Part shown: positions 12,685 to 59,159 of the stretch, piece after piece
Layout of the letters: the number at the start of each line of letters is the position of its first letter
How positions within the stretch are numbered: position 1 is the first letter of the stretch
Sequence record: NC_031245.1
Direction: 5' to 3' (one strand)
Length of the DNA stretch: 64,000 nt
Translations under genes and position numbers: made by a program
Notes under the pieces: generated by a model
The model's input: the letters and a program-made list of their open reading frames with translations, nothing else
Databases searched by the model: none
Told to the model about the DNA's origin: nothing

Positions 12685-12713
12685 TATAAACGTCTACTAA
12701 GCTCTAATCAAGC
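12685..12713 (-). promoter_or_regulatory. Phage promoter motif GCT-N17-ACGTTTATA
   Basis: Exact motif and spacing on the minus strand, facing the 3D gene. Confidence 0.75.
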
Positions 12714-12720
12714 TGATTAA

Positions 12721-12897
12721 TTAAGAGTAGAGAGTACTGTAGGATTGAGCTAACTGAATAACTTGTGACTCATTCAGAATTTTAGTACCCTCATTCATAA
12801 TAACTTTATAACTTCCACTATCTGGAGTTACAGTAATACCTTTTGACTGAAGAATTCTAATAGAAGTACTTAATTGTTGATCAAATGATTGTTGCAT
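12721..12897 (-). CDS. Small hypothetical protein
   Basis: GGAG RBS + ATG; about 58 aa. Confidence 0.55.
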   Translation of the reverse strand: MQQSFDQQLSTSIRILQSKGITVTPDSGSYKVIMNEGTKILNESQVIQLAQSYSTLYS

Positions 12898-12932
12898 ATC
12901 TAACACTCCATTTCAGATAAATTATAAGCATT

Positions 12933-12981
12933 AAAAAATGTAGGACTGAGAATAACTACCTAGAAACTTCTCAGTCCTACA
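12933..12981 (-). terminator. Intrinsic terminator
   Basis: 14-bp stem TGTAGGACTGAGAA/TTCTCAGTCCTACA with a T tract on the minus strand. Confidence 0.7.
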
Positions 12982-13007
12982 ATCAGCATTGAGATGAGCT
13001 CAGCAGA

Positions 13008-13292
13008 CTAATCGAATTGATTGAAATAATCACGAATGTAAGAGTCACTCCAGCACTCCTCAATTATCTCGAATCCATCTTCGAATAAAGCTGACACAAT
13101 AGTCGAACCACCAAATTCAGTATCTGGATTTGACTTAAACGAATGAGAAACTACGGCACCATGTTTCTCAAAGTATTCAGCCTTTAGGATACTAAGAATT
13201 TGGTCATCTGAGATAGGTAGTTGATAGATAGGATAAACCATCCTACCATTTTCAATTACGTATGGACGTACGTAAGAGTCTTCATGCATCAT
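13008..13292 (-). CDS. Hypothetical protein
   Basis: GGAG RBS; has its own upstream promoter motif and downstream terminator. Confidence 0.65.
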   Translation of the reverse strand: MMHEDSYVRPYVIENGRMVYPIYQLPISDDQILSILKAEYFEKHGAVVSHSFKSNPDTEFGGSTIVSALFEDGFEIIEECWSDSYIRDYFNQFD

Positions 13293-13356
13293 TAGAACAA
13301 CAACTCCGTTCCTTAGAATAATTAAACTGTCATTGAAGGAGAAAATCCCTCACGAC

Positions 13357-13385
13357 TATAGACGTCTAGCAAACGTTAGTTCAGC
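13357..13385 (-). promoter_or_regulatory. Phage promoter motif GCT-N17-ACGTCTATA
   Basis: Exact motif and spacing. Confidence 0.75.
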
Positions 13386-13395
13386 CAATTAGAAT

Positions 13396-13427
13396 AAAAA
13401 AAAGTAGGTACCTATATAGGTACCTAC
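13396..13427 (-). terminator. Intrinsic terminator
   Basis: GTAGGTACCT-atat-AGGTACCTAC hairpin plus T8 on the minus strand. Confidence 0.8.
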
Positions 13428-13439
13428 TAACGGCTGGGA

Positions 13440-13715
13440 TTAGTTTACGAGTGATAGCTTAAGATAGTATTCTGAGTTTTCATTATCGGGATTACCTAGG
13501 AATGCTACGGTTTCTGAGTCATTGTTAGCTTCTTTCAATTTAGCGAAGGCATCACCGTCAGTTGGATAAAGAAGTAGCATACCGTTACCTAATGCTCCAC
13601 CTTTGTCCATAACCATTAACTGTGTACCTGCATGGAGAGAAAGTTTATCATTCAGTTTTAACTCTTTAACCAATTCAACATTACTTCCAATTTCTAGCTC
13701 AACATAAGATGTCAT
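13440..13715 (-). CDS. Hypothetical protein
   Basis: GGGAGG RBS before ATG (MTSYVE...). Confidence 0.7.
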   Translation of the reverse strand: MTSYVELEIGSNVELVKELKLNDKLSLHAGTQLMVMDKGGALGNGMLLLYPTDGDAFAKLKEANNDSETVAFLGNPDNENSEYYLKLSLVN

Positions 13716-13772
13716 AAAAGTACCTCCCAAAAGTTGTATTATCAGTCGTAGACAGTCCCCGACCGTCAGGAG

Positions 13773-13801
13773 TATAAACGTTTAGGAAAGTTGAATAAAG
13801 C
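13773..13801 (-). promoter_or_regulatory. Phage promoter motif GCT-N17-ACGTTTATA
   Basis: Exact motif and spacing. Confidence 0.75.
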
Positions 13802-13857
13802 TACGGACACAAGAAAAGATGGCTACCTCAAATTCGAGGTAGCCATTGGGTACGGAA

Positions 13858-14106
13858 TTAAGCAGTTTTAGGAATCTGTAAAGGATGATAGAATTCAGAG
13901 CTTTTGTCGAAAGGATTAACTTGAATGAATTCAATTTTGAGTTCCTTAAACTTACGAACTGTCTTAGTTGAAACTGGCGATAGCAAATAATCATTTTGAT
14001 AAGGTTCAGATTTAAACTTAACACCTTTTGCGAAAGTATGATCTCCAACTTTCAACGGTCTAGCTAATTCAACAATTCCACCTTCAAGAACTTCTTTAAT
14101 TTCCAT
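13858..14106 (-). CDS. Hypothetical protein (possible paralog of 13440-13715)
   Basis: GGAGG RBS before ATG (MEIKEV...); similar N-terminal pattern (G..VEL...LK). Confidence 0.65.
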   Translation of the reverse strand: MEIKEVLEGGIVELARPLKVGDHTFAKGVKFKSEPYQNDYLLSPVSTKTVRKFKELKIEFIQVNPFDKSSEFYHPLQIPKTA

Positions 14107-14154
14107 AGGTACAAACCTCCAAAGAATTATTAGCGGATAAACCGCTTGCAAAAC

Positions 14155-14183
14155 TGTAAACGTTTATCGACACGGGATTAAGC
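14155..14183 (-). promoter_or_regulatory. Phage promoter motif variant GCT-N17-ACGTTTACA
   Basis: Same spacing; one mismatch in the downstream box. Confidence 0.65.
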
Positions 14184-14414
14184 TAACTTTAAGCGGAACC
14201 GTAAACGGGGCGGGGTTACGGTCAAATTTACCTTCTAGAACGTCGAAAACGGCTTATAAGAGGTTCTAAAAGTTTAGGCGAAGGGCGGTTGGCGGTGAAT
14301 CGCTACGAGCCTTCTAGGGCGTTATTAAGTTCTATCATTAGTTATTAAGTACTTAATACCAATTACTTATTCAATAAGGTAGGAATTTCTTTCAAAAATT
14401 AATTTCCATAGTTG

Positions 14415-14443
14415 GCTGGATTTACCTTTGGCGAACGTTTATA
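14415..14443 (+). promoter_or_regulatory. Phage promoter motif GCT-N17-ACGTTTATA
   Basis: Exact motif upstream of the sigma gene. Confidence 0.75.
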
Positions 14444-14604
14444 CTTGCGGTTAGGGAGGTTCTGCCCTAAAGTAAAAATTTTTGGAATAACGAAAATAAC
14501 TGTGGCTTTTTAACCGAATTAGGGGGATAATGGTCTTGTGGGGTCGAATTCGACCTTAGACTAAGCGACTTGGTTGGTTGCTAATAAAACTTGGAGGTTG
14601 AGAA

Positions 14605-15303
14605 ATGGATTTTGAAAAATCGAATATGAAGTCGAAACTTTATGACAAGGAATCTCAAGAAGAGAACGTTCCTGTAGGTGTTAATCAAATGGCGGATCTA
14701 TTTGGGGAGAAAGCTACTGAAATAGTTCGAGGTGTTGCTAGGAAGTACGGTAATCCCCAACTCGGTATCGAAGCGTGTGACTTGGAACAGGAACTTTGGT
14801 TAAAGATTCTTGAGGAAGTTGATAAAAGTGGCGGTCAAGTAATGAATGCAAGATTGACAGCTCGGACTTCATATAATAAAGCTGTGGATGTCTATCGACG
14901 TGAAAGACGAAGATGGGATAGTAAAGCTGATATGGTTTCAGATGAAAACGTATCCAAGTGGGCAATGGAAATTTGTACTCGTAAAAATCCGATGATGGCA
15001 GTTCATCCTTTTCGTCAACCTGAGAAGTTCTTGGAAATTAAGGATATGGTTGAAGAGTTTGAAGTTGGTTCAAGAGAAAGGAAATTTATCGTAATGAAGG
15101 GTTACATAGAAGGTGTCTTCGAATTAGGCGAAGCAGTCGAACTTGAACCTTCTATCGATAAGGAACGTTTAATCGGGATGGAAAGTTCTGAACATAGAAT
15201 GGCTAAGGAATTGGGTCTAAGTGGTTCAGGAAGTGGAAGTTATAGAAAGCTTAAGAGAAACGTTCGTAAGATAGTCCGTACGTATTTCGGTGATGATGAT
15301 TAA
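14605..15303 (+). CDS. Phage RNA polymerase sigma factor (sigma70/ECF-like)
   Basis: Region-2-like DLEQELWLKI...NKAVDVYRRERRR; C-terminal HTH-like RMAKELGLS. Confidence 0.7.
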   Translation: MDFEKSNMKSKLYDKESQEENVPVGVNQMADLFGEKATEIVRGVARKYGNPQLGIEACDLEQELWLKILEEVDKSGGQVMNARLTARTSYNKAVDVYRRERRRWDSKADMVSDENVSKWAMEICTRKNPMMAVHPFRQPEKFLEIKDMVEEFEVGSRERKFIVMKGYIEGVFELGEAVELEPSIDKERLIGMESSEHRMAKELGLSGSGSGSYRKLKRNVRKIVRTYFGDDD

Positions 15304-15308
15304 AACTG

Positions 15309-15340
15309 AATGGCTCCTAAGTGAGCCATTCTTTTTTTTT
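15309..15340 (+). terminator. Intrinsic terminator
   Basis: AATGGCTC/GAGCCATT stem followed by T9. Confidence 0.85.
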
Positions 15341-15375
15341 GTCATTATTAATAATCTAAGGTAGGAACCGACTTC

Positions 15376-15404
15376 GCTCGATCAAGGCTTACTAAACGTC
15401 TATA
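15376..15404 (+). promoter_or_regulatory. Phage promoter motif GCT-N17-ACGTCTATA
   Basis: Exact motif and spacing. Confidence 0.75.
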
Positions 15405-15439
15405 CTTGTGAATCGGAACTGCAAGGGAGGTCAGTCATC

Positions 15440-15823: not shown

Positions 15824-15839
15824 GAGAGGAGTGAAATGA

Positions 15840-17840: not shown

Positions 17841-18197
17841 ATGTCATCATTAGAAAGTACTATCTATGATTCAGGTAAAGTTGCTCAAGTTAGCCAACAT
17901 TCTCCAGAGCTAGGTACTGTTAAGCGTTTGATAACTTTACCTCGTATTCTAGCTCAAGCCGTAGTAAGCGATTTTGATATTTACATGCAACGAGAAGGGT
18001 ATCAGTTCACTAAGCACGAAGTATCAATATTTGAGCTAGTTAGAACTGCTAACTCAACACAACTAATGACAATTGCTGAAATATTCCCTGCTGTAGTATT
18101 TGCCTACTTAGAGTGGTCAGGTTTATCACATCCAGACTTAGAATTCAAAGTAGTAGAAGGCAATTCGTTCGAAGTCAGCTCGATTGACGTTCAGTAA
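17841..18197 (+). CDS. Hypothetical protein
   Basis: AAAGGAGG RBS; lies between the two topoisomerase subunit genes. Confidence 0.7.
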   Translation: MSSLESTIYDSGKVAQVSQHSPELGTVKRLITLPRILAQAVVSDFDIYMQREGYQFTKHEVSIFELVRTANSTQLMTIAEIFPAVVFAYLEWSGLSHPDLEFKVVEGNSFEVSSIDVQ

Positions 18198-18206
18198 ACG
18201 TTTATA
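18178..18206 (+). promoter_or_regulatory. Phage promoter motif GCT-N17-ACGTTTATA
   Basis: Exact motif upstream of the topoisomerase A subunit gene. Confidence 0.75.
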
Positions 18207-22497: not shown

Positions 22498-22526
22498 GCT
22501 CTAATCAAGGTGCTTACACGTCTATA
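22498..22526 (+). promoter_or_regulatory. Phage promoter motif GCT-N17-ACGTCTATA
   Basis: Exact motif and spacing. Confidence 0.75.
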
Positions 22527-23224: not shown

Positions 23225-24793
23225 CTGGAAACAATACGTAAGATTCGGATTGAGGTTTATAACAACTATGCAAAAGTCAGCAAAGATGATGACTACTCGT
23301 TTTCAGTCGCTAGCTCCTATTACTCGTTACCTAAGGACATTCGTAAGAAAGTCTATGGTCAATGGGTCACGAGAAAGGAGATATTCAGACTTTACGAAAT
23401 CAACAAGAATGGGGACATTATACTCCCTAGAGGTCTAGTCGAACTAGTTAATCCACAATACGTTGATATCGTTTCTAAGGAAATAGTCACCTTAGACAAG
23501 ACTGACTTAAATGACATTAGCGACGAACTGATAGCTAAGATTCTCCAACCTGAATCTGGATTCGACTTAAGGTCGGATCAAATTACAGCTATTAGGAAAG
23601 CTTATTTAATCAAACGAGGTATTCTTCAATTAGCTACTGGTGCTGGAAAAACTGAGATTATGGCTGGATTAATGAAACTGTTATACTCTATCTACGGATT
23701 CTATCCTAAGACTCTCATAATCGAGCCTACGCTTCATTTAGTTAAGGATACGGTTAAGAGATTGAAGAAGTATAACATTCCAGCTTCAGCTTATACTTCC
23801 CATAGGGATATCAATAACTCAGAAGTAATCCTGACGCATCCTGTATCTCTAGGTAATGACGTTGAGAAAAATCCTGATTTATTAAATGGTATCCAAGTAA
23901 TACTGTATGACGAAGGTCATCACCTTAGAGCTGATACTTGGTTCGCATTGATGAAGAGCCTGACTAGGGTTGAGTACTCGATAGCTCTATCTGCATCCAT
24001 AGTCAGTCCTGATAAGGTAGGATGCCTAGATCTCAAACAGTACACAATAGGTGAGGCATTAGCGGTAGGGGGATCAGGTCGACTTCTATTAAGTATACCA
24101 CCTTCCTATTATATTAGGAAAGGAATCCTAGCTACTCCAGTTGTATTTCAGCTTCATAATCCTGCTAATGAACCTTGTGAAGATGAAACTAAGTGGCATC
24201 AAAAAGTCAAGTACAGATTAGAGTCTCCAACACGTAGTGGATTAGCTTCACGTACGGCTGGATTCATGGCATCTCTAGGTCGAAAGTCACTCATATTTGT
24301 ATCGACCAAAACTCATGCTAAGAGGTTGATGGAAGTAATGACTAATATGGGATTTGACTGTAGGTGCTCATTTGGAGGAGGAGTTTACTTAAAGTGGGAT
24401 CCAGTAAGTAATAAATCTGTTAATGTAACAGAGTCAGAAGATAGTATGGAGAAGTTTAAGTCAGGTGAGTTCAAAATCCTTATAGCCACAAGCCACTTGC
24501 TTGAAGGAGCAGACGTACCTAACTTAGACTGTATCATCATCCTAGATGGTGGTAAGAAACTACGTAAGATGATTCAAGAGGTAGGTAGGGGTATTCGTAA
24601 AACTAAAACTGGTAAGTACGCATACTTAATAGACTTCTCAGATCATGATGACAATGTGCTGAATCGGCACGCTCAGGAACGTCTATACTTGTACAGGGAG
24701 CTCATCCAAGTACCTGATGAATTAATCTATACTGGAGTTTCATTCCCATACTTAAAGAAGATATTCTTAGAATTGGAAGGCATAGAATTATAG
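23225..24793 (+). CDS. SF2 DEAH-type DNA helicase (UvsW-like), non-canonical CTG start
   Basis: Frame of ORF 23660 is open back to TGA at 23216-23218 and includes LRSDQ (Q motif) and ATGAGKT (Walker A); DEGH, ATSHLLEGADVP, QEVGRGIR; AGGTGA RBS 6 nt before CTG. Confidence 0.8.
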   Translation: METIRKIRIEVYNNYAKVSKDDDYSFSVASSYYSLPKDIRKKVYGQWVTRKEIFRLYEINKNGDIILPRGLVELVNPQYVDIVSKEIVTLDKTDLNDISDELIAKILQPESGFDLRSDQITAIRKAYLIKRGILQLATGAGKTEIMAGLMKLLYSIYGFYPKTLIIEPTLHLVKDTVKRLKKYNIPASAYTSHRDINNSEVILTHPVSLGNDVEKNPDLLNGIQVILYDEGHHLRADTWFALMKSLTRVEYSIALSASIVSPDKVGCLDLKQYTIGEALAVGGSGRLLLSIPPSYYIRKGILATPVVFQLHNPANEPCEDETKWHQKVKYRLESPTRSGLASRTAGFMASLGRKSLIFVSTKTHAKRLMEVMTNMGFDCRCSFGGGVYLKWDPVSNKSVNVTESEDSMEKFKSGEFKILIATSHLLEGADVPNLDCIIILDGGKKLRKMIQEVGRGIRKTKTGKYAYLIDFSDHDDNVLNRHAQERLYLYRELIQVPDELIYTGVSFPYLKKIFLELEGIEL

Positions 24794-26209: not shown

Positions 26210-26238
26210 GCTCGATTGGAGCTTTTGGGACGTCTATA
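26210..26238 (+). promoter_or_regulatory. Phage promoter motif GCT-N17-ACGTCTATA
   Basis: Exact motif and spacing. Confidence 0.75.
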
Positions 26239-28626: not shown

Positions 28627-28655
28627 GCTCATTTAAGCTTGTCCAAACGTTTATA
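28627..28655 (+). promoter_or_regulatory. Phage promoter motif GCT-N17-ACGTTTATA
   Basis: Exact motif and spacing. Confidence 0.75.
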
Positions 28656-32547: not shown

Positions 32548-32576
32548 GCTCTTTTCCAGTGTCTGGGACGTTTATA
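32548..32576 (+). promoter_or_regulatory. Phage promoter motif GCT-N17-ACGTTTATA
   Basis: Exact motif and spacing. Confidence 0.75.
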
Positions 32577-34176: not shown

Positions 34177-34205
34177 GCTCATTTAGAGTTTCGCTAACGT
34201 TTATA
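34177..34205 (+). promoter_or_regulatory. Phage promoter motif GCT-N17-ACGTTTATA
   Basis: Exact motif and spacing. Confidence 0.75.
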
Positions 34206-35262: not shown

Positions 35263-35291
35263 GCTGAATTGAGCCTCCTAGAACGTCTATA
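35263..35291 (+). promoter_or_regulatory. Phage promoter motif GCT-N17-ACGTCTATA
   Basis: Exact motif and spacing. Confidence 0.75.
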
Positions 35292-35604: not shown

Positions 35605-36939
35605 ATAGAGTGGAACATCGAAGAATTAAGTCGTGATCCTGAGTACGGTAAAAGCTATGTGGTATGTCCTGTATGTGGACTAAGAGGTAAGAGAATAGCG
35701 AATCATATCAGAGCAGTACATGGATTGTCAGGGGATGAAGCTAAGGGTAAGTATCCAGGACTACTGACAATAACATCAAGTTCTCGTACGAAACAAGCTA
35801 GTACTCGTAAAACAACCACTGCTAAGAAGAATGAGAAGAAGATAAAGAATAAATTTATAAGTCTGGATGAAGCTAAGCTTGATCCTCAGTACGGTAAGAA
35901 GTATGTCGTATGTCCTATATGCAATCAAAAGTGCAAGTCTGTATCAGCTCATGCTCCTAAGAAGCATGGAGTTAAATTAAAAGATATCCGTAAAGAGTAT
36001 CCAGGTATCTTAGTAGAGACTGAAGCTATGTTCAACCGTAGGTCTAAGATACTAGCTAAGAGATGGGAAGAGGATGATGAGTACAGAGCGATGATGATCA
36101 ACATGATGACTAATCGAGAAGTCAGTGAAGATACTCGTAGAAAGATCAGTGAAAGAGTAAGTATTCAGATGAAAGAGAGATGGAGAGATCCAGTTTATCG
36201 TGAATACTACTCCGAACGATTAAGACAATTTAATAGAGATAATTGGAACAATCCAGAGTATCGAGAATTGATGGCTCAAGCACTGAGTGATCGATGGGAT
36301 GACCCTGAATACCGTGAGTTGATGATTTCTAATCTCCATGCAGGTCGTAATAAGTCCTGGTTGGAGAATAAAGAAGCTCGACTAGAAGCACTCCGTGAAG
36401 GCGGATTCTTTGATAAAAGTTCTCCAGAAGTACGTCAAAAGATATCAGAGATTATGCTAGAGAAGTGGGCTGATGAGGAGTACGCTTCTAGTCAGATTGA
36501 TGCTATAGCTAATGGAAATTACGGAGCTCATCAGCAAGGACTGCATGGTCGTAAGTGCTACTACATTGACCGTAAAGGAGATACTCACAAATTCCAATCC
36601 TTAAGAGAACTTCAGTACGCTATCTATCTCGACTCAGTTGGTATCGAGTGGAAGTCCTCAAAAGATATTAAGAAACTTCCCTACAAGGATCAGAGTGGAG
36701 GTTCTCATCGTTATACTGCTGACTTCTACCATGGAGGTCATTACATTGATATCAAGGGATGGAGAAGTTCTGCAGTTAATCATAAAATGGAGGATGCTGC
36801 TCGACGTAATGGTGTTATAGTCATACCTATTGATGCGGATAGACTAGACGAATTCTGTCCAGTTAAGTACTTCAGTCTTATCAGTCGGGTTAGACATAAT
36901 GATACAGTAAACTATGTCAGCTGTATTAAATGGTCTTGA
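35605..36939 (+). CDS. Freestanding putative homing endonuclease: two C2H2-type Zn fingers, WxDPEYR repeats, C-terminal PD-(D/E)xK nuclease
   Basis: CPVC..HIRAVH and CPIC..HAPKKH; five W.D/NPEYR-like repeats; FQS..E..YA..LD...YTADFY....IDIKG; GGGAGG RBS favours ATA start at 35605 (track start 35551). Confidence 0.6.
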   Translation: MEWNIEELSRDPEYGKSYVVCPVCGLRGKRIANHIRAVHGLSGDEAKGKYPGLLTITSSSRTKQASTRKTTTAKKNEKKIKNKFISLDEAKLDPQYGKKYVVCPICNQKCKSVSAHAPKKHGVKLKDIRKEYPGILVETEAMFNRRSKILAKRWEEDDEYRAMMINMMTNREVSEDTRRKISERVSIQMKERWRDPVYREYYSERLRQFNRDNWNNPEYRELMAQALSDRWDDPEYRELMISNLHAGRNKSWLENKEARLEALREGGFFDKSSPEVRQKISEIMLEKWADEEYASSQIDAIANGNYGAHQQGLHGRKCYYIDRKGDTHKFQSLRELQYAIYLDSVGIEWKSSKDIKKLPYKDQSGGSHRYTADFYHGGHYIDIKGWRSSAVNHKMEDAARRNGVIVIPIDADRLDEFCPVKYFSLISRVRHNDTVNYVSCIKWS

Positions 36940-36948
36940 ACGTTTATA
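36920..36948 (+). promoter_or_regulatory. Phage promoter motif GCT-N17-ACGTTTATA
   Basis: Exact motif overlapping the end of the upstream ORF. Confidence 0.75.
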
Positions 36949-40289: not shown

Positions 40290-40318
40290 GCTCTTAACAA
40301 GGTTCATAGACGTTTATA
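40290..40318 (+). promoter_or_regulatory. Phage promoter motif GCT-N17-ACGTTTATA
   Basis: Exact motif upstream of polA. Confidence 0.75.
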
Positions 40319-40352: not shown

Positions 40353-43300
40353 ATGGCGGATACATCAACTAGTAAAGAAATATTCCCTATAGGAACCTTG
40401 AATCCTACAGTTTATATTGTAGGAGAATCACCTGGAGCTATTATGGGACAGGCAGGTACATATCTTCAAAAGATTACTCGTAGTTTAGGACTCGACACTG
40501 AGATCAATTTAAGAATGTTCTCGATTTCTCGTAAGTTTGGAGAAGTTGATGCTTCTTATATGACACAGTCAAGTCGATTCGTATTGGCGGATTTGGCAAA
40601 AACTAAGCCTAAAGTAATCATAGGATTAGGAGCTACACCTGCAGGACTTCTAACTGGATCTATGGGTCGAGTTAGTGATATTCGAGGTAATGTCGAGAAG
40701 ATTACTGTAGGGGATCATGAGTGTTATTTTATCACAACTTTCCATCCAGGTTACATTCTGAATAATGCTGGTAATACGGCTATAATGAAGACATTCCTAG
40801 GAGACTTCAGGAAAGCGATAGCTGCATCTGAGGGTAAGGTTGATGCGAATAGCGATAAGGACTTAAGGATAGCTCTTACTGCACAAGAATTTGAAACATT
40901 TTTAAAGAACGAGTATACAGCTGATGGTGAGACATCTTACGATATTGAGACCAATGGTGCTGACGAACTTAGTAACAAGGCTAAGGTAGTCGGATTTTCC
41001 ATAGCTCCAGACGAAGTTAAAGGTATATACGTTATCTTTGAGGCACTTGAGTACAAAATGCCTGAGGAAGATGTAGAAAGATGTAAGACATTACTCAGAG
41101 ACTTCTTGAAAGAGAGACGAGTAATCATACACAACCAAATGTATGAGCGACCTTATACATTAAATGAGAACTGGCTTGGATATGACCTTCATGACAATAT
41201 AGACGACACACTAGTTATGTCTCGTTTGATGTTAGGAGGTAAAACTGGTGCTGGTTTGAAGGATCAATGTCGACTCAACTTAGGATATACGAAGTGGTCT
41301 GAAGACTTGGATAAGTATCTCCATAGATTCAACGAACTTCAAAATAACTTGGCTCCAACGAATGCAGGTTCACTTCGTGAAGAACACAAGGTATTAATTC
41401 AAGAGAAGTCAGTTAAAGCTCTGGCTGATTATATGATTCTTCAAGTTGAGGAGTCTTTGAATAGACCGACAAAAGAAGGGCATGCTAAGACGAAAGACAT
41501 TCCAGGAACTTTAGAGCTTATCAGATCAACTTTAAGTAACGACAACATAGCTTGGTCAGATATGAAAGAAGTCATGGAGAACTTCAAGGTATTTGATAAT
41601 CGTCAACGTAACGTAGCGATAGCTGCTTGGAAGATGGTCAAATTAATTGAAAGATTCTATACTACTGAAGAGGAATTTAATTTAATAGATGGACTTGTAG
41701 CTAAGGCGATCAATGATCGACTAGAAAAGGACGATTACTCGTTCGTTTCATACGGATTAGTTCCAATGAAAATAATAGCTCCATACGGTGCACTGGATGC
41801 TGTAGCTACAGTCGACTTGAAGAAGTATTACTACAAACGTATGAAAGAGGAGTCTGAGACATTAGGACTTGATCTACTTCAAGGTTATTCAAACTGGATG
41901 AAGCATTTCAAGATGGCTTACGTTATGGAACGTAACGGAGCATTCTGGAATGAAGAGTTAGTTAAGAAGGAACGTAAGTTCTTAGAAGGTACAGCAGTTG
42001 AAGCAACTCGTACTCTTCACAAGTCTCCACTAATGGCTGACTTCCTAGCTGAGAAGAAATCTGGAAGTTTTGCTACTTTCGTAGTAACTAAGATGCCTGA
42101 TGCGATTTCCCGTTCACGTGAAATCTTTATATCTGACATTAGAACTAAGAAACGTAGTAAAAAGAAGAAGGAAGTAGTTTTCTCTGACGGTAGCGTAATT
42201 GAAATGACGAGTACAGCTATCTTGGATCTACTTACTCCTGAGGAACTAGAAAATGCTAAACAGGCATGGATCAAAGATATGAATGATACTATCTTCAGTG
42301 AATTCACGAAGATTAGTGAGTTCAAGGAATACTTCAATCCAGGTTCTCCAGCGAATAAGACTTACTTGAATAAAATATTGGTCAATGACGAAGTTCGTGC
42401 TGCTAGATTCTTATCAAAAGTTAAGAACGAGTTATTCACTCAAGATAACTTCTCAGTGGACAATTATCCTGCTTCTGATAGAATGTTCCTGAAAGCTGTT
42501 CAGTCAATTCTGGATAGAATGTCTGGTATCAAGAAAGCAGTAGCTGATCTTGAAGAGGATGAGATTATTGACAATCCTGAGTGGGCAGATTTGGATGAAG
42601 AGGAAGAAGTAACTGTAGATAAGATTACAGCTAAGGAAGGATTCGCTGAATATATCGAAGTTCTTCGAACTGCTAGGTTAGAGTCTCCTGATTTGGTCAA
42701 TATGTTTGCTGAGTGTTTGAATTGGGACTTACCTGGTACTAAGGAAATGGACATGATTCGTCTACACGAAACTTACCAATTAATGGGTATTGATATTGAG
42801 GACGAATCTTTATGGAATGAAGAGTACAGATTCTTGTACAACTTCCGTTTATACAAGAAGTGTATGAAACTTGTATCTTCTTATATTACTGGTAAGTTAG
42901 GCTACGAAAATGCTTGGATAGTTGATGGTGAGAAACTAGCGTCTGGTGAGAAGTTCGTACCACGTGAAGTTAAGTATAAAGCTCAAGGACTAAAGACTAA
43001 TCCTGGACAAGTAGTTTTACTTCAGACTAGCTTTGCTCCATGTTCAGCAGAAACTGGTCGTTGGAGAGCAGGGATTCATACGATTCCGTTCGGTTCATCC
43101 ATTAAGGAATTGTATACTTCTAGATTCCCTGGAGGTACAATAGCTGCACCTGACTTCTCCCAGATGGAGATTCGTGCGATGGCTGGTGCTGCAAATGATA
43201 AGAAATTGTTGGATGCCTTCTTGCGTGGAGAAGATATTCATAAGTTCAACGCTCAACAGATATTCAAACGTGAAGATGTTACAGAAGTTGAGCGTCGATT

Positions 43301-43576
43301 CTCGAAGATGGCATCGTTCGCTATCTTGTACGGATCATCCGAATACTCAGTTGCTCAAAGTTACTTCAAAGGTGATATAAAAGCAGCTGAGGAGCTATTC
43401 TACAACTTCTATTCAGCGTTCCCTGATGTTAAGAAGTTTATTGAAGAACGTCATAAAGAGATGGAGCAAACTGGTAAAGTTAAGCTTCTTACAAATCGTT
43501 TCTTAAATGTTACTCCTAAGACAATGGATCCTAAGGACATAGGTAAAGCTAAGCGTAATGCTCAGAACTATCCGAT
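40353..43576 (+). CDS. polA: Family A DNA polymerase with N-terminal UDG-like domain and 3'-5' exonuclease, exon 1
   Basis: GESPG/FHPGY UDG fold; YDIET, HNQMYE, YGALD exonuclease motifs; TGRW, PDFSQMEIR (motif A), RRFSKMASFAILYG (motif B); ends RNAQNYP-AT. Confidence 0.9.
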
Positions 43577-44674
43577 TAATTGTAGTCGCCTTGCATCGTA
43601 AGGTGCATTGAATAACTCCCTTAACTGCAAGAAAGTCCTAGCTAGAACCGTCCTATAGGATAGTTCCACCTAAGTGACAACTTGCATCCAAGCTTATCCT
43701 TTAAAGACTTGGAAAGGTGGAGTAACTATGTTCCATAAAAACAGATTCATATATGTATTAAAAGATGGTCGAGATGGAGTTCCATTCTATGTCGGTTCAG
43801 GAGTATATGGTGACCGACCGACTCAACATGTAGAGTTAGCTCTAGGTAAGAGTACATTCAGAAGAAATGCTGAGCATGAGTCGATGTACAAGTTCATCCA
43901 AGAAATAGCTGAAAGTGGTAATGAGGTTAAAGTTGAGATACCACATGAGGACTTACCTTATGAAGAAGCTATGGAAGTTGAGGAGAACTTAACTAGAGAA
44001 ATTGGAACTCGATATGATGGAAATGGACCTCTATTCAATGTGAAGTACGGTAATAAGTTCCCTGAAGGATTTAGAGCAGGAGAGCGTAATTCATTCTACG
44101 GTAAGTCACATTCAAGTGAAGCTCTTGAGAAGATGAAAACTAAGCGTAGTAAGACATGGACTTGTAGTGAGGAAACTAAAGCTAAGAGAAGTAAGAACCA
44201 TCGAGGACCTACTTCAGTCAAGCTGTATGATAAAGATATGAATCTCGTATCAGAGTTTACTCAAATCAAGAAATGTGCTGAATACCTTAGAGACACTCAT
44301 CCAGAGTTGCCATTCTCGAACACTATGGTCAATGCATATTCAAAGTCTGGTAAATTAATGAACGAGTTATACCACATAGTCCGACAAGGAAAAGAAGGTT
44401 CAACGACTATCGAAAGCTAGACATCCTCATTCGTTGAGATTACGTAAATAGACGTGAGTCTAGGAGGGTTGAAGATAAGGTACCTATGGTACACGAAGCA
44501 AGTAGAGTACAGCCTAAGTGATTGAGGTAGGGTAAACCGTGATAAGGTTTATAATTCCCTTTAAATGGAAATGGGGAGCATCCTATTGGTAGAACCTCTA
44601 GGATGGTGACATAGTCTGCTCTATATGGTGACATATAGAAGGATGAATTAGCGAATTCATTCGTAACATAAAGG
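43577..44674 (+). mobile_element. Group I intron carrying a GIY-YIG homing endonuclease
   Basis: Splicing CCG AT|T CAA restores NYPIQGAASD; exon 1 ends in U and intron ends in G; P (TAACTGCAAGAAA), Q (AACTTGCATCCAAG), R (TTCAACGACTATC) and S (GACATAGTCTG) elements. Confidence 0.9.
43728..44420 (+). CDS. Intron-encoded GIY-YIG homing endonuclease with NUMOD3/NUMOD1-like motifs
   Basis: FIY...FYVG, R..H, EVEE, LFN; NSFYGKSHS.E; VKLYD.D.NLV.EF; AAAGGTGGAG RBS. Confidence 0.85.
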   Translation: MFHKNRFIYVLKDGRDGVPFYVGSGVYGDRPTQHVELALGKSTFRRNAEHESMYKFIQEIAESGNEVKVEIPHEDLPYEEAMEVEENLTREIGTRYDGNGPLFNVKYGNKFPEGFRAGERNSFYGKSHSSEALEKMKTKRSKTWTCSEETKAKRSKNHRGPTSVKLYDKDMNLVSEFTQIKKCAEYLRDTHPELPFSNTMVNAYSKSGKLMNELYHIVRQGKEGSTTIES

Positions 44675-45194
44675 TCAAGGTGCTGCATCAGATATTGCGG
44701 GAGTGGTACTTTATAAAGTTCAAGAGTTCATCGAAGAGAACAACTTTATCTCTAAGCCGTTCTGTTTCATCCATGACTCTATTGAAATTGATCTACACCC
44801 TATGGAAATGATTCAAATCTCTAAACAAATCATACCTTTAATGAACAACTTCCCATATGAAGAGTTTGGAGTTCCTTGTAAAGCAGGACTTACAATTGGA
44901 CCTTCAATGGGTGAGGAAATCGAAGTAGAAGAAATCGTATCTAATGACGACTTCTCCGAAGCAACTTTCCACTTAGTAGGTTATATTAATGAAATCGAAC
45001 ACTTAGCAGATGTTTGGAAGGTTGCATATCCTAAGGTTGTAATGGAAGATGTATATGACGATGCAGGTAATCCTAAGATTGAGGATCAATATATCTCTCG
45101 TCACGAGTTGTTCTTCCCTAAGAGAGCATTCTCTCGTTATACAGGTACAACTCGTAAGTTTGGTCATAAGAAAATTCACATCACGATCAAATAA
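44675..45194 (+). CDS. polA: Family A DNA polymerase, exon 2
   Basis: QGAASDIAG and FIHDSIEID (motif C); spliced CDS is 3744 nt (1247 aa). Confidence 0.9.
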
Positions 45195-47493: not shown

Positions 47494-47781
47494 TTGAAAA
47501 TATATGAGATTTATAGAATAGAGAATGATGGGACTATGAAGTTCATGATGTACACTAAGTCAGATAGTCGTTCAGAACTCTATAAATTTATCAAAAATGA
47601 GAAAGTCATATTCCCTGATAGTCACAAGTACAAGATAGTAGAGAGCAGTGATGATATCTTAGATATCAGTAAGCCTTACGAGTACGTAAGAGGATGTCCT
47701 CGCCATAGAATACCTACTCCTGAGGAAAATTGTCCTATATGCGATGGAAAGGGAGAACTCATGATACGTAACATAGGCTAG
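47494..47781 (+). CDS. Hypothetical protein
   Basis: GAGGTG RBS + TTG; C-terminal C..H..CPIC. Confidence 0.6.
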   Translation: MKIYEIYRIENDGTMKFMMYTKSDSRSELYKFIKNEKVIFPDSHKYKIVESSDDILDISKPYEYVRGCPRHRIPTPEENCPICDGKGELMIRNIG

Positions 47782-47802
47782 TCAGCTTGACTAGCCTTCT
47801 TT
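47775..47802 (+). terminator. Hairpin/terminator overlapping a promoter motif
   Basis: AGGCTAGTCA-gct-TGACTAGCCT plus TCTTT; the loop is the GCT box of the promoter. Confidence 0.6.
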
Positions 47803-47813
47803 AAACGTTTATA
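47785..47813 (+). promoter_or_regulatory. Phage promoter motif GCT-N17-ACGTTTATA
   Basis: Exact motif and spacing. Confidence 0.7.
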
Positions 47814-48793: not shown

Positions 48794-48822
48794 GCTCATT
48801 TCAACTTCGCTAGACGTTTATA
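48794..48822 (+). promoter_or_regulatory. Phage promoter motif GCT-N17-ACGTTTATA
   Basis: Exact motif and spacing. Confidence 0.75.
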
Positions 48823-50768: not shown

Positions 50769-50797
50769 GCTGGATTCAACGCTCTCATACGTCTATA
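50769..50797 (+). promoter_or_regulatory. Phage promoter motif GCT-N17-ACGTCTATA
   Basis: Exact motif and spacing. Confidence 0.75.
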
Positions 50798-51656: not shown

Positions 51657-51685
51657 GCTCTATTCAGGCTTACTAAACGTTTATA
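51657..51685 (+). promoter_or_regulatory. Phage promoter motif GCT-N17-ACGTTTATA
   Basis: Exact motif and spacing. Confidence 0.75.
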
Positions 51686-52941: not shown

Positions 52942-52944
52942 GTC

Positions 52945-52973
52945 GCTCGATTCAGGTTTTCTAAACGTCTATA
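52945..52973 (+). promoter_or_regulatory. Phage promoter motif GCT-N17-ACGTCTATA
   Basis: Exact motif and spacing. Confidence 0.75.
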
Positions 52974-53024
52974 CTTGTGAAGTTGGTTCCGACACTTTCG
53001 GAATTGCAAAAGGGAGTGAAGTAA

Positions 53025-54968: not shown

Positions 54969-57044
54969 GTGAAGAATGAAGAATTGTTAACTGATACTTA
55001 CAACAACGATGGTGACCAATACCCTGATTTTGAACAAGTAGTTGCTGATAGATTTAATTGGGTCATAGGTCTGAACGAGCATCTATTTACTACAAACGTG
55101 GATCCTCAAGCTATGTGGGATGCATACCTTAACAATTTACCAGCTGAAGCTCAGCAACACTATAACTGCCATGCTTGTAGACACTTTATCCAAAGATTCG
55201 GTGGATTAGTCTTCATCGATGGAGTTGGTGATAAGCACTCAGCTATCTGGGAGGAAACTAAAACTCCTGCATTCTTCGCTAATTCCGTGAGAGCTATGAA
55301 GGAGTTAGTACAAAGTGCTACAGTCAATGGAGTATTCATACCTGAAAATGCAGTATTAGGTCAACCTAAGACTGGTGAGTGGACTCACTTGGCAGTTAGG
55401 TTACCTAAGACTAGAGTTCATAAAAATAGAATCAAAACAGCTCATCAGGTATATGCTGAGAAGATTCATAACTTTGAAACTCTGATCAATGCGATTCTAT
55501 CTTTTGAGCCAGCTACTGTAGATACAGCAGTTCAATTGCTAGAGTCCGATACTTTATACCGTGCTGACAAAGTAATGGATAAGGCTAGATGGTTCCAGAA
55601 AGTAATTAAATTAAGAAATCAGGCAAGTACTTCTGAGCGTAAACGTAACGTAGTTTACATGATGGTAGCCCTAGCACCTACAGGATTCACTTCTATCAGA
55701 AGTGGTAGCTTAGGTAGATTGCTTGAAGTTATCGAATCAGGTGCAACTTACGAGGCAGTAAAGGCTGATTTCCGTAAGATTATGGATCCAGATAACTATC
55801 AACGTTCTCAATCAGCTCCAACTGCTACTGCTATCTTTAATGCTGAGAAGTTTATAGAGAAGCACGGACTAGGTGAGTCATTAGACAGACGATATGCTAC
55901 TATTGAGGAAATACCTGAGTTCTTATGGCAACCTAAAGGTCAACCTAAGGAATTAGCCGAGAAGAAATCTACTGGAGGAGTATTCAGCCATCTGACTCCT
56001 AAACAAACGTCAACAACGACTGCATCAGTAACAGGTCAAAATATTCCAGCTAAGTTGATGACCTTCGAGAAGTTCAAGAATACAGTACTACCAAGTGCTG
56101 ATGCTATCGAAGTACTTGTCGACAATCCTAATCGAATCATGGCTATGGTAACTGCTAACATTCCAACTGCTGAGAATATTCTTCAGTGGGACAATCCTTT
56201 CTCTTGGTACTACCATGGAGGAGTTGATGCTAGCATCAGAGAACGTCTGGAGGAGTATGGTGGACGTTATGAAGGCAATGAAATTCGTGCATCCTTAATT
56301 TGGGAAGGATTAACTGACTTAGACCTTCACTGTATCAGTCCTACTGGTGAGCATATTTACTATTCCACTGGTAGTCGACGTGACCGATTCGGAGGTTATC
56401 TTGACTTAGATATGAACGGAATGGACAAATCTAGTCATAAACCTGTAGAAAATATTAGATGGACTAATGCTCCTGAGGGTCGTTATAAATTCTATGTCCA
56501 CAACTACCAAGAAAGAGAGAATGGACGAAATGGTACTCCATTCAGAGTTGAGTTAGAGATCAACGGTCAGGTTTATCATTATGACGGTAAAGCATTAAGA
56601 AATAATCAGCAGGTTACTGTATTTGAGTTTGACTATAGAAAAGGTCAACAGCCAAATATCCAATCTGCAGGAGTTTCTTCTAGTGCGGAGGACTGGACTG
56701 TTGAAACTAATAAGTTCGTGAAGGTCAATGGTATCACGACTTCACCTAACTTATGGGGAGATAAACCAGTAACACATGCTGGGACTCATGTATTCTTCTT
56801 ACTTGATGGAGTCAAAGATACGTCTGAAGGTAAAGGACGAGGATTCTTTAATGAAATGCTTAAGTCCGACCTACGTGAAATCAGGAAGACTCTTGAGCTT
56901 TATACGGCAAGTACTCCGATCAAAGGTGCTGAAGAAGCAACTGCATGTGGAGTTGGTTACAATAAAGATACAGAGTGGAACTTGACAGTCAAAGTGACCT
57001 CAGGTGGTTCTTCTCGTTTAATTAAGATTGACCGATGGGATTAA
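54969..57044 (+). CDS. Large hypothetical protein with C-terminal DUF2135/YfaP-like beta-sandwich
   Basis: HYNCHACRHF motif; RASLIWE..TDLDLH..SPTGEHIYY..GGYLDLDMN..VENIRW. Confidence 0.6.
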   Translation: MKNEELLTDTYNNDGDQYPDFEQVVADRFNWVIGLNEHLFTTNVDPQAMWDAYLNNLPAEAQQHYNCHACRHFIQRFGGLVFIDGVGDKHSAIWEETKTPAFFANSVRAMKELVQSATVNGVFIPENAVLGQPKTGEWTHLAVRLPKTRVHKNRIKTAHQVYAEKIHNFETLINAILSFEPATVDTAVQLLESDTLYRADKVMDKARWFQKVIKLRNQASTSERKRNVVYMMVALAPTGFTSIRSGSLGRLLEVIESGATYEAVKADFRKIMDPDNYQRSQSAPTATAIFNAEKFIEKHGLGESLDRRYATIEEIPEFLWQPKGQPKELAEKKSTGGVFSHLTPKQTSTTTASVTGQNIPAKLMTFEKFKNTVLPSADAIEVLVDNPNRIMAMVTANIPTAENILQWDNPFSWYYHGGVDASIRERLEEYGGRYEGNEIRASLIWEGLTDLDLHCISPTGEHIYYSTGSRRDRFGGYLDLDMNGMDKSSHKPVENIRWTNAPEGRYKFYVHNYQERENGRNGTPFRVELEINGQVYHYDGKALRNNQQVTVFEFDYRKGQQPNIQSAGVSSSAEDWTVETNKFVKVNGITTSPNLWGDKPVTHAGTHVFFLLDGVKDTSEGKGRGFFNEMLKSDLREIRKTLELYTASTPIKGAEEATACGVGYNKDTEWNLTVKVTSGGSSRLIKIDRWD

Positions 57045-57070
57045 TTCTAAATAAAAATAGATAAATAAAG

Positions 57071-57096
57071 GAGCTAGGGAAACCTAGCTCTATTTT
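57071..57096 (+). terminator. Intrinsic terminator
   Basis: GAGCTAGG-GAAA-CCTAGCTC plus TATTTT. Confidence 0.8.
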
Positions 57097-57120
57097 AGTC
57101 TAAGGGAGAGATAATACATC

Positions 57121-57645
57121 ATGTTTGTTAACTACAATTACCCTAACTGGAAAACTGCTCACATAATGATACCTGACCTAATTAACAAAGCATTCGAAGT
57201 AACAGCATTCGGCTCAGGGACTCAAGGTTATATAACATGGTTTGGTTCTGACTTCACTCAATACGTACCTAAGGAAGAGAACTACCGAGAAATCGTGGGG
57301 ATGATTACTCAAGCATTCATCGTTAGAATGATAGAAAAACTTGATCTTGAGAAACAGTTGACTAGCGAATTCACATTCAGTCCAAACGATGAAGTAGTAC
57401 GTGCTCGAATTCAGGATAGAATATACACTATACTCAATAAATTTCACTATGATACAGGCTTCACTATTCAGGATGAAATGAGTAGATTTGTGTTAGGAAT
57501 GCCTACGGATTTTGGTAGTTTCAAACTAGAACCTAAGTCAAAGTATTATAGTCCTAAATACAAAGAATTTGTTAGATTTGTTACTAAATTAGATATAGTT
57601 AAAGCACAATTGGAAGCTGAATACAGCGGTCTCAAACGTCTATAG
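57121..57645 (+). CDS. Hypothetical protein
   Basis: AAGGGAG RBS; 174 aa. Confidence 0.7.
   Translation: MFVNYNYPNWKTAHIMIPDLINKAFEVTAFGSGTQGYITWFGSDFTQYVPKEENYREIVGMITQAFIVRMIEKLDLEKQLTSEFTFSPNDEVVRARIQDRIYTILNKFHYDTGFTIQDEMSRFVLGMPTDFGSFKLEPKSKYYSPKYKEFVRFVTKLDIVKAQLEAEYSGLKRL
57616..57644 (+). promoter_or_regulatory. Phage promoter motif GCT-N17-ACGTCTATA
   Basis: Exact motif inside the 3' end of the upstream ORF. Confidence 0.72.
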
Positions 57646-57666
57646 TCTTGAAAGGGAGGTCATCTC

Positions 57667-57891
57667 GTGGAAATACATCAAATACTATCTGGTCGTCAAC
57701 AAATGCGTCACGAAGCTAAATTCATTTTGGAACAAACTGATAAAGGTGACTTCAAGATAGTTAAGGACGCTGATATGTTCAATCATTCTGTTGGACTTAA
57801 AGTTAAGACTCCTCTAACTTACTTGAAGAAACAAGAAAAGACATTAGTATTTTACAACGACAATAGAGTTGAAGCTAATTTCACTCTATAA
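57667..57891 (+). CDS. Hypothetical protein
   Basis: GGGAGG RBS + GTG. Confidence 0.65.
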   Translation: MEIHQILSGRQQMRHEAKFILEQTDKGDFKIVKDADMFNHSVGLKVKTPLTYLKKQEKTLVFYNDNRVEANFTL

Positions 57892-57923
57892 CATCATGAA
57901 TTGACAACAAGGAGTAATGCATC

Positions 57924-58529
57924 ATGAATGACATCAATGGGACAGTACATCCTCGACTGTACGTCTTGGAGGGGTACGAAATGGTAGGTAAGACTGAATT
58001 CATTGATTCTTATCTACAACATGCTTTCAAGTTCCGACCTTCATATGAGGATCTCAATCTAAGAGAATTCATACCTGGTAATTCAAGGAGTCTTCTTGGA
58101 GTTACGGTACTTGACTTCCTCTCTCAGAATCCAGTTCTAATCAATCGGGATATGGTATTCGATAGAGGGTTATTAAGTGGACTGCTCTATGCTAAGTTGT
58201 ATCCTCAAAACGGTACCAACATAGAGCAGGATATTGATAGATTTCTTGGAATGTATCGTATGATGGATACCAAGGTAGTCTATCTATATCACACTGACAA
58301 GGAGTATGCTCGAGATATGTTCGAGTCCAGTAAAAGTCGGACAACTAACGATGCGTCATTTGATCCACCGACTTTCGATAAGTACTGGGACGAGTTCTCT
58401 CGTACGCATGAATGGGCAATAGAGATATTGGAGAAGTACTTTGCGTCATCAGGAGTTTCGTATACTATGATACCAACGATACAAGCTCGTGATGAACAGT
58501 ACGTAAAAACTAAATTAGATCTACTGTAA
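57924..58529 (+). CDS. dNMP kinase (thymidylate kinase-like P-loop)
   Basis: VLEGYEMVGKTEF P-loop; VFDRG. Confidence 0.7.
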   Translation: MNDINGTVHPRLYVLEGYEMVGKTEFIDSYLQHAFKFRPSYEDLNLREFIPGNSRSLLGVTVLDFLSQNPVLINRDMVFDRGLLSGLLYAKLYPQNGTNIEQDIDRFLGMYRMMDTKVVYLYHTDKEYARDMFESSKSRTTNDASFDPPTFDKYWDEFSRTHEWAIEILEKYFASSGVSYTMIPTIQARDEQYVKTKLDLL

Positions 58530-58553
58530 TTTGTAGTTTAGGGGGAAATTGAT

Positions 58554-59105
58554 TTGACTAAGAGAGTTGCATTTGACATTGATGATACACTAAGTAAAAG
58601 TATGCCTAAGTTTGTTAGCGAACTTAACCTATTAACAGGTAAGAACATTCAGTTCGAAAGTATCCCTGAACTGATCAAGGACTTACCAATTTACTCTAAT
58701 CCATTGTTTTCATTATACAGTGAAGTTGGGGATGAGGTACTCTCATCCCATTTCAGAGAAAATGAAGCATCCTGGATCCTCAATATGGAAGTAATGAAGG
58801 ACGGACTAGCTAAGGCTAAGGAACATGCTGAGCTTGGTCATGAAATCTTCTATATTACTGCTAGACCTATTGCGGTAAAATTTGAGACAGTTCAGTGGTT
58901 AATGCTTCATGGATTTCCTGTCGGAGAAGTATTTCATAACTGGGACAAACTGAAGATGGCTAGAAATTATAACATTGACATATTTTACGAGGACAATCTC
59001 CACAATGCTAAGCTGCTAGCTGATGCAGGTATCGAGACTTACTTGATTGACGGAGTACATAATCGTCAGATTGATCTCGGAATTGAACGACTCTATTGGA
59101 AATAA
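58554..59105 (+). CDS. HAD-family 5'(3')-deoxyribonucleotidase (NT5C-like)
   Basis: FDIDDTL, YITAR, FYEDNLHN. Confidence 0.82.
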   Translation: MTKRVAFDIDDTLSKSMPKFVSELNLLTGKNIQFESIPELIKDLPIYSNPLFSLYSEVGDEVLSSHFRENEASWILNMEVMKDGLAKAKEHAELGHEIFYITARPIAVKFETVQWLMLHGFPVGEVFHNWDKLKMARNYNIDIFYEDNLHNAKLLADAGIETYLIDGVHNRQIDLGIERLYWK

Positions 59106-59130
59106 TATTTTCCAAATTTAGAAAATAAAG

Positions 59131-59159
59131 GCTGTATTTGGAAGCTACGAACGTTTATA
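59131..59159 (+). promoter_or_regulatory. Phage promoter motif GCT-N17-ACGTTTATA
   Basis: Exact motif and spacing. Confidence 0.75.

Follow-up and report, generated by a model that had tools for sequence, protein, structure and literature searches.

Bacillus phage SP-15 (NC_031245/KT624200, 221,908 bp, genus Thornevirus) carries a near-identical bipartite sequence element, GCT-N17-ACGTYTATA, in front of gene after gene. What this element does, and which protein reads it, is the question addressed here. The stretch analysed, referred to as the window, comprises 64,000 nucleotides that megablast matches at 100% identity to genome bases 62001-126000, and 22 copies of the element lie in it between positions 12685 and 59159. 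The element is probably a promoter of a phage-specific class that covers all non-structural genes and is read by a phage sigma factor on host core RNA polymerase. This class would comprise genes for replication, nucleotide metabolism, and DNA modification together with many small genes. The reader is most likely the phage's own divergent extracytoplasmic function (ECF)-like sigma factor, SP15_078, and not the main sigma factor of the host.

The GenBank record for SP-15 annotates terminators and three weak SigA look-alike promoters, and the motif sites bear no annotation. The words promoter, sigma, and transcription are all absent from the SP-15 genome paper (PMC5977210). No published account of the motif was found in the literature searched, and a literature string search with its nine-nucleotide core returned only primers and unrelated sequences. 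The promoter family is previously undescribed, and its functional type, a phage sigma factor with cognate promoters, is already known.

Sequence and extent of the motif

In the window, GCT-N17-ACGTYTATA has 21 exact matches, against 0.02 expected and at most one in dinucleotide shuffles, and the core alone has 22 matches against 1.38 expected. The original prediction, made from the letters of the window, had listed 22 copies, and all are present: 21 are exact, and the 22nd, at 14155-14183 on the minus strand, keeps GCT and has the core variant ACGTTTACA. An isolated core, ACGTCTATA, lies at 24679-24687 within the helicase open reading frame (ORF) SP15_088; it lacks GCT, scores below 12 bits with a position weight matrix (PWM), and is most likely a chance occurrence. 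The PWM was trained on a strict set of 55 genome-wide matches to the search pattern, and sites were called at a threshold of at least 22 bits. It recovers the same 22 sites in the window and no others. Applied to the whole genome, as had originally been suggested, it returns 65 sites at this threshold, the true sites scoring 22-51 bits, and nothing in the interval from 12 to 22 bits; a shuffled genome reaches 2.9 bits at most.

The two core blocks stand at the spacing first described, but the element is longer than the 29 nt originally assigned to it. The full motif spans approximately 38-40 bp and reads T-GCT(c/g)nATT-aaGtT-N-AAACGTYTATA-nTtGTGAAG. With the G of GCT as position 1, the upstream half has a T at -3 (42 of 55 strict sites) and GCT followed by (c/g)nATT, a weaker aaGtT block lies around positions 10-15, and the downstream half consists of AA at 19-20, ACGTYTATA at 21-29, and nTtGTGAAG at 30-38. 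G35 is present in 54 of the 55 strict sites and T34 in 49. Because these flank positions lie outside the search pattern, their conservation is independent evidence and not a product of site selection.

The first ~15 nt past the motif (+4 to +19 after TATA; for example, 15408-15423 and 52977-52992) are purine-rich and resemble Shine-Dalgarno (SD) sequences. Their mean duplex energy with the anti-SD sequence is -6.6 kcal/mol, compared with -2.8 kcal/mol at random positions and -10.5 kcal/mol at true ribosome-binding sites. This segment may be a 5'-proximal stabiliser, as in Bacillus mRNAs, or may reflect a preference for a particular initial transcribed sequence. Six leader segments fold no better than shuffles, so the conserved feature is a DNA signal and not an RNA structure.

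Genomic placement

All 65 SP-15 copies are co-oriented with genes, and nearly all lie between genes. A crude gene model that leaves 19% of the genome non-coding places 52 of the 55 strict sites in intergenic DNA, and the distance from TATA to the next same-strand start has a median of 55 nt and a minimum of 17. Only four sites lie on the minus strand, all ahead of the only minus-strand genes nearby, SP15_073 and SP15_075-077 in the window. Downstream of each of the 22 window sites, at a distance of 22-184 nt, a gene begins on the same strand; eight of the sites come immediately after an annotated terminator or overlap one, in keeping with the earlier claim that every copy points to a downstream gene, often after a terminator. 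The absence of copies from the late block at 1-10.9 kb, also claimed, extends in the PWM scan to all of window 1-12684, which holds late and lysis genes. On the scale of the genome, no motif lies between 19.5 and 74.6 kb, the virion/lysis block, and the site at genome 19.4 kb stands before SP15_028 and the genes for ribonucleotide reductase that are embedded in that block. A pair of conserved blocks always the same distance apart, an intergenic position, and co-orientation with genes match a sigma-type bipartite promoter. Where the sites lie, which way they point, their constant spacing, the phylogenetic footprint, and the distribution over the genome lend this promoter reading strong support.

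Conservation in relatives and co-variation with the sigma factor

The proposed reader, SP15_078 (14605-15303, plus strand), is a divergent ECF-like sigma factor of 232 amino acids. By tblastn against 50,697 phage records, it is found only in SP-15, the Listeria phage LIS04 (51% identity), and the B. cereus phage HSE3 (vB_BceM-HSE3; 39%). Further relatives are metagenomic contigs (Logan696, L125, L126, L127, L130, and L131) located via the sigma protein and not via the motif. LIS04 and HSE3 share with SP-15 the gene order lysis genes, sigma, small ORF, topoisomerase, and in both, GCT-N17-ACGTTTATA recurs between genes with its spacing unchanged. The HSE3 genome has 37 motif sites, all of them outside its structural block at 36-89 kb, and the motif occurs with the exact 17-nt spacing in Logan contigs as well. 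An exact-motif scan of IMG/VR gave multiple matches only in SP-15, with single, chance-level matches in other contigs.

Every motif-bearing genome examined encodes an SP15_078-type sigma at the same syntenic position. A cognate promoter copy upstream of the sigma gene, the arrangement looked for in an autoregulated sigma factor, is present in SP-15 (14415), LIS04, HSE3, Logan696, L127, and L131, so that the copy originally noted there in SP-15 is conserved in both phages and in metagenomic relatives. Across five phages, the spacer from the sigma gene to the gene that follows it has a mean identity of 49%, and its sole invariant columns are GCT, ACGT, TATA, TT, and T. A second orthologous site, ahead of the topoisomerase subunit gene, shows a like footprint in four phages.

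More distant sigma homologues (30-39% identity; L125, L126, L127, L130, and L131) retain the synteny. This clade keeps the ACGTTTATA-nTnnTG block and the spacing, and the triplet GAG, usually as GAGTaAAT, replaces GCT upstream. The triplet 20 nt upstream of the nine-nucleotide core is GCT at 58 of 68 sites in SP-15, 35 of 40 in HSE3, 9 of 11 in LIS04, and 8 of 10 in Logan696; it is GAG at 11 of 14 distant-clade sites. When the sigma proteins are aligned, every member shares the region 2 segment YNKAVDxYRxxRRR, whereas the last helix differs by clade: it is SG[SAG]Y[RQ] where the promoters carry GCT and P[AG]SW where they carry GAG. Such a pattern is expected if the downstream block, which stays constant, is recognised by region 2 and the upstream block, which varies, by the C-terminal domain. 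Orthologous sites show purifying selection, and the motif co-varies with the sigma over two clades only. A GCTC/GAGC dyad in the upstream half was considered as a feature of the motif and rejected; it occurs at some SP-15 sites only, and the GAG clade keeps AGnT there without the dyad.

The sigma factor SP15_078 and its paralog SP15_217

SP15_078 belongs to a family of approximately 207 representative clusters at 50% identity among 1.84 billion proteins. In PHROGs it appears only in a two-member family of unassigned function, and an ECF reclassification paper left out the HSE3 sigmas Gp01/Gp17/Gp103 as too divergent (bioRxiv 10.1101/2019.12.11.873521). The region 2 model PF04542 (Sigma70_r2) is matched by 14 of 18 close relatives and 10 of 46 broader relatives (best E 1.5e-5). 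When a profile of the 46-member family is compared with the PDB, ECF sigmas are the sole matches, with E values of 0.018 and 0.028 over regions 2.1-2.4. Family proteins are 202-232 amino acids long with two domains and no regions 1.1 and 3, and the AF2 model of SP15_078 (pLDDT 76.6) contains helical blocks at residues 27-127 and 139-228 with a linker of low confidence between them. The C-terminal pattern GSRERKxVV...ExxxAxxLG...SGSYRxxKxxxRK resembles region 4, and this domain is helical in the model; from pattern and position, it is inferred to be region 4. No signal was obtained when the family was aligned by hhalign to a region-4-bearing sigma from a Logan contig (probability 0.2) or when a Pfam-positive family member was compared with the PDB by phmmer, and Foldseek against the PDB and a viral library gave nothing usable beyond the paralog and weak sigma matches.

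The second phage sigma presupposed in the original prediction exists as SP15_217, which lies outside the window (genome 169402-170010, minus strand), is annotated as hypothetical, and is 70% identical to SP15_078. Region 2.4 and the last helix, the two segments proposed to read DNA, hardly differ between the proteins, so either paralog may act on the motif. A cascade in which SP15_217 acts on the motif and SP15_078 acts on late promoters was set aside because of this near-identity. SP15_217 is transcribed against its neighbours.

The ORF downstream of the sigma gene, SP15_079 (127 amino acids), was considered as a possible co-transcribed anti-sigma factor; it is kept in close relatives, has its own motif promoter, and matches no Pfam or PHROG family. 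HSE3 carries further sigma-like genes at L118:62-670 (minus strand) and L118:9483-10091, and its gp001 has an unrelated N-terminus of 82 amino acids fused to a region-2-only segment. One Logan contig (L122:7243-8034) encodes a 263-amino-acid protein with a genuine Sigma70_r4_2 domain, for which tblastn finds no counterpart in SP-15.

Host-type start-up promoters and the sigma leader

Between the motif copy and SP15_078 lies a host sigma-A-type promoter, TGGCTT-N17-GATAAT followed by GTGGGG (14503-14531, plus strand), and just downstream of its -10 element is a perfect 14-bp palindrome, GGTCGAATTCGACC (14542-14555). Together they form an early module (window 14503-14555) of the pattern GTGCTT/TGGCTT-N17-[GC]ATA[AC]T, then GTCTTGTGGGG, then a CGAATTCG-centred palindrome. 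SP-15 contains exactly three such modules, before SP15_078, SP15_217, and SP15_272; the latter two lie at genome ~170132-170070 (minus strand) and 201723-201790. SP15_217A and SP15_271A, the small ORFs annotated around these two, are therefore unlikely to be genes. Other generic SigA-like sequences in SP-15 are no more frequent than chance and lie mostly in coding DNA, on both strands. In relatives, the CGAATTCG core of the palindrome is kept and the flanks change in a compensatory way, which suggests that the palindrome is an operator or a 5' hairpin.

Homologous sigma-A-type promoters are also found ahead of the sigma genes in relatives: LIS04 has two, one on either side of the motif, and the Logan contigs and the distant clade have them as well, with a perfect TTGACA-N17-TATAAT in L127. 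The evidence in HSE3 is weaker and consists of AT-rich 9-of-12 matches only. No homologues of SP15_272 were found in other phages, which leaves the sigma as the only conserved product of the host-type promoters; SP15_272 was rejected as an alternative activator because it is not conserved.

A sigma-A-type promoter, usually in tandem with the motif, implies a host-driven start-up followed by positive feedback. The motif copy at the sigma gene is consistent with the positive-feedback circuit first proposed. To this is added the sigma-A-type promoter at 14503-14531, distinct from the motif, which answers the question of how a purely self-activating loop gets started. The 161-nt sigma leader (14444-14604) folds better than shuffles (z = -2.8), and in the predicted fold the ribosome-binding region is paired with a segment that the shorter transcript from the sigma-A-type promoter would lack. 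Speculatively, the motif-driven and sigma-A-driven sigma transcripts might be translated differently. The pair TTGGTTGGTT...ACTTGGAGGT is common to the sigma leaders of relatives and to the leader of SP15_087.

Proposed mechanism

After injection of the DNA, host sigma-A polymerase would act on the three sigma-A-type promoters, two of which would drive SP15_078 and SP15_217. The phage sigma, a two-domain ECF-like protein of approximately 200-230 amino acids, would then bind host core RNA polymerase. Its C-terminal helix-turn-helix would read GCT(C)nATT around -35, and its region 2 would read the CGT-containing block ACGTYTATA around -10. Initiation would occur within the conserved T-G-A-A-G, 6-9 nt past TATA, and the motif copy ahead of SP15_078 would add positive feedback. 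Core-polymerase binding, the assignment of domains to blocks, the start site, and the timing are all inferred. One possible register follows ECF promoters, with CGTY as the -10 element, GCTC 17 nt upstream, and T34/G35 as -1/+1; another possible register takes TATAnT as the -10 hexamer, with a start near position 38.

Weighing the alternatives

The motif is assigned to the phage sigma because the two co-occur in every relative, because the upstream block co-varies with the sigma C-terminal domain at the clade level, and because no other conserved gene has a host-type promoter of its own. These computational findings favour the original proposal that the element is the promoter of a phage sigma, namely the product of the gene at 14605. 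Several observations weigh against it. SP15_078 itself scores 17.6 bits against PF04542, under the curated cut-off of 24, and 18.4 bits against TIGR02937, where the cut-off is 42.9. The region 4 models PF04545 and PF08281 match none of the 46 relatives, and ECF sigmas rank top but weakly (E 0.2-3) when the whole SP15_078 model is compared with the PDB by Foldseek. Judged as a canonical ECF promoter, the motif has CGT and a fitting GCTC-N17-CGT spacing, and its upstream block lacks the ECF hallmark AAC. TATAnT within the motif could act as a sigma-A -10 hexamer. With only two clades compared, the co-variation would look the same whatever clade-specific protein reads the upstream block. Finally, a search of the SP-15 and HSE3 structural blocks for a late promoter yielded no convincing shared element, and with late promoter and factor both not found, the sigma could instead serve late genes.

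One alternative is sigma appropriation, in which host sigma-A holoenzyme uses TATAnT as its -10 element, a phage activator reads GCT or GAG in the manner of T4 MotA/AsiA, and the phage sigma-like protein serves another class, such as late genes. TATAnT (motif positions 26-31) equals TATAAT at five of six positions, T-12, A-11, T-10, A-9, and T-7, while the sequence at the -35 position with a 17-nt spacer, TsnATT, is a weak sigma-A match that would call for an activator. The original statement that the motif does not match the SigA consensus thus stands for the full TTGACA-N17-TATAAT, since the -35 position reads TsnATT with an invariant GC just upstream, but not for the -10 element, where TATAnT resembles it. 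The missing late-gene promoter and factor and the two-clade co-variation fit this alternative as well. It does not account for the invariant ACG directly upstream and TG downstream of TATAnT, which play no part in sigma-A recognition, and the CGT approximately 17 nt from the upstream block fits ECF promoter geometry, of which that trinucleotide and that spacing are established features. These phages write canonical sigma-A promoters, but only before sigma genes, and the sigma is the only conserved product of the early promoters, SP15_272 not being conserved. That proper sigma-A promoters are written where they are needed argues that the motif itself is not one, and sigma appropriation is on balance unlikely. 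An unrecognised phage-encoded or virion-delivered RNA polymerase of the T7-like, N4-like, or jumbo-phage type would suit the dozens of near-invariant copies, which are conserved through the presumed start site as T7-type promoters are, and many SP-15 ORFs lack an assigned function. However, no phage RNA polymerase is annotated in the whole genome, no polymerase domain is found in the ten large unknown proteins scanned, and HSE3 (124 kb) has the same system with a smaller proteome that lacks a polymerase. A bipartite element with a variable 17-nt spacer and a span of ~38 bp instead fits the footprint of a multisubunit holoenzyme, and a dedicated phage polymerase is very improbable. Equally far from likely is that the element is no promoter at all but an operator or a signal for RNA processing or stability, or that it is a site for a host alternative sigma such as a host ECF sigma. 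The purine-rich, SD-like segment after the motif, with its lower anti-SD energy than random positions (-6.6 vs -2.8 kcal/mol), could act at the RNA level; against this, fixed-spacing blocks around a variable spacer argue for protein-DNA recognition, the six tested leaders fold no better than shuffles, and the sites lie after terminators and before operons. A host alternative sigma is difficult to reconcile with a motif that is kept across B. subtilis, B. cereus, and Listeria hosts with very different alternative-sigma sets.

Comparison with known systems

The proposed phage-sigma system resembles that of SPO1 (gp28 for middle and gp33/34 for late genes), another large Bacillus phage with thymine-replaced DNA that encodes small sigma factors. 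In SPO1, host core polymerase is redirected, after a host sigma-A phase, to bipartite promoters with elements approximately 17 nt apart, and in SP-15 it would be redirected in like manner. The SPO1 middle promoter consensus, AGGAGA-N17-18-TTTNTTT, differs from the SP-15 motif, and the SPO1 sigmas have no detectable sequence similarity to SP15_078 in the tblastn search of phage records. Unlike SPO1, SP-15 has one promoter class that covers all non-structural genes, and a second, late sigma tier was not found.

Bacterial ECF sigmas (group 4; B. subtilis SigW/SigM/SigX, AAC-N16-17-CGT) likewise have two domains, approximately 200 amino acids, and a region 2.3-2.4-like motif. As in ECF systems, the SP-15 -10 block contains CGT at a 17-nt spacing, and the sigma gene is preceded by its own promoter. 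In contrast, the SP-15-type upstream block is GCT(C) or GAG(T) and not AAC, the -10 block AACGTYTATA is longer, SP15_078 falls under curated thresholds, its region 4 is matched by no model, and no anti-sigma partner was identified. SP15_078 may be functionally like SPO1 gp28 or an autoregulated ECF sigma and is not demonstrably a member of either group.

T4 middle promoters, which combine a MotA box with a sigma-70 -10 element and depend on AsiA, also pair a non-canonical upstream element with a TATAnT-like -10, and the SP-15 motif similarly serves replication and nucleotide-metabolism genes. The SP-15 system differs in the extra invariant bases that flank the -10 and in its putatively cognate phage-encoded sigma; no MotA or AsiA homologue was noticed in SP-15, where no dedicated search was made. 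T7-type promoters likewise occur in dozens of nearly identical copies whose conservation extends across the start region, but they are 23 bp long, whereas the SP-15 element is bipartite with a variable spacer and spans ~38 bp, and no phage RNA polymerase gene was found in the annotation or among the ten large unknown proteins scanned.

Modified DNA and wider implications

In SP-15 DNA, approximately half of the thymines are dihydroxypentyluracil bearing glucose and phosphoglucuronolactone, a bulky, negatively charged modification (PMC5977210). The promoter carries five invariant T positions. It is conceivable, if rather doubtful, that the sigma family evolved to read or require hypermodified promoter DNA, or that the invariant T positions are selectively kept unmodified. 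If true, this would be a natural coupling of base hypermodification to promoter recognition beyond that of SPO1 gp28, which depends on hydroxymethyluracil. The handling of hypermodified DNA by RNA polymerase becomes directly testable.

To our knowledge, SP-15 and its relatives have been studied only for their exotic DNA chemistry, and the motif gives them a first regulatory map. The circuit in SP-15 would be simple, passing from an initial phase on three host-type promoters to a single phage sigma family that acts on approximately 65 near-identical promoters. The two natural specificity classes, GCT and GAG, make an attractive comparison for the study of DNA recognition by a divergent region 4, and the sigma/promoter pair could supply orthogonal expression parts for Bacillus and Listeria.

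Individual promoter copies in the window

Four copies lie on the minus strand. The copy at 12685-12713 (38.3 bits) would drive SP15_073, a lytic transglycosylase gene whose start is 183 nt downstream. Those at 13357-13385, before SP15_075, and 13773-13801, before SP15_076, directly follow terminators at 13393-13427 and 13814-13845, respectively. The ACGTTTACA variant at 14155-14183 (22.0 bits) precedes SP15_077 and is divergent from the sigma promoter.

The remaining copies are on the plus strand. The putatively autoregulatory copy at 14415-14443, upstream of SP15_078, is an exact match. The copy at 15376-15404 follows a terminator (15308-15340), precedes SP15_079 and the topoisomerase operon, and shows the phylogenetic footprint. 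At 18178-18206, a copy kept in four phages extends over the 3' end of SP15_081 and precedes SP15_082, which encodes a topoisomerase II subunit. A terminator precedes each of the copies at 22498-22526 (before SP15_087), 26210-26238 (before SP15_090, a dNTP hydrolase gene, and a primase gene), 34177-34205 (before SP15_100, UDG), and 35263-35291 (before SP15_102/103). Copies at 28627-28655 and 32548-32576 lie before SP15_093 and SP15_097, and the copy at 36920-36948, before SP15_104 (RNase H), overlaps the end of SP15_103. Further along, copies precede the DNA polymerase gene SP15_109 (40290-40318), SP15_119 (47785-47813), SP15_120 (48794-48822), SP15_125 (50769-50797), and the nucleoside deoxyribosyltransferase gene SP15_127 (51657-51685). 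The GCT half of the SP15_119 copy lies inside a terminator hairpin (47776-47802), so that termination and re-initiation signals are physically interleaved over 47776-47813. The copy at 52945-52973, before SP15_129/130 (reductase and Thy1-like synthase), has the top PWM score of the window, 50.1 bits. The last two are at 57616-57644, before SP15_133 and overlapping the end of SP15_132, and at 59131-59159, before the exonuclease genes SP15_136/137.

Other observations

In the late region, AATACAAT directly precedes the ribosome-binding site where three late operons begin (genome ~34975, ~49185, and ~56425). The SpoIIID-like protein SP15_284 (HSE3 gp024) is a candidate late regulator. An Rfam scan of the window at the gathering threshold, including group I and II intron models, was empty, as was a tRNA scan of the window. 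The DNA polymerase gene (40353-45194) is annotated as split by an insert that contains an endonuclease ORF (43728-44420).

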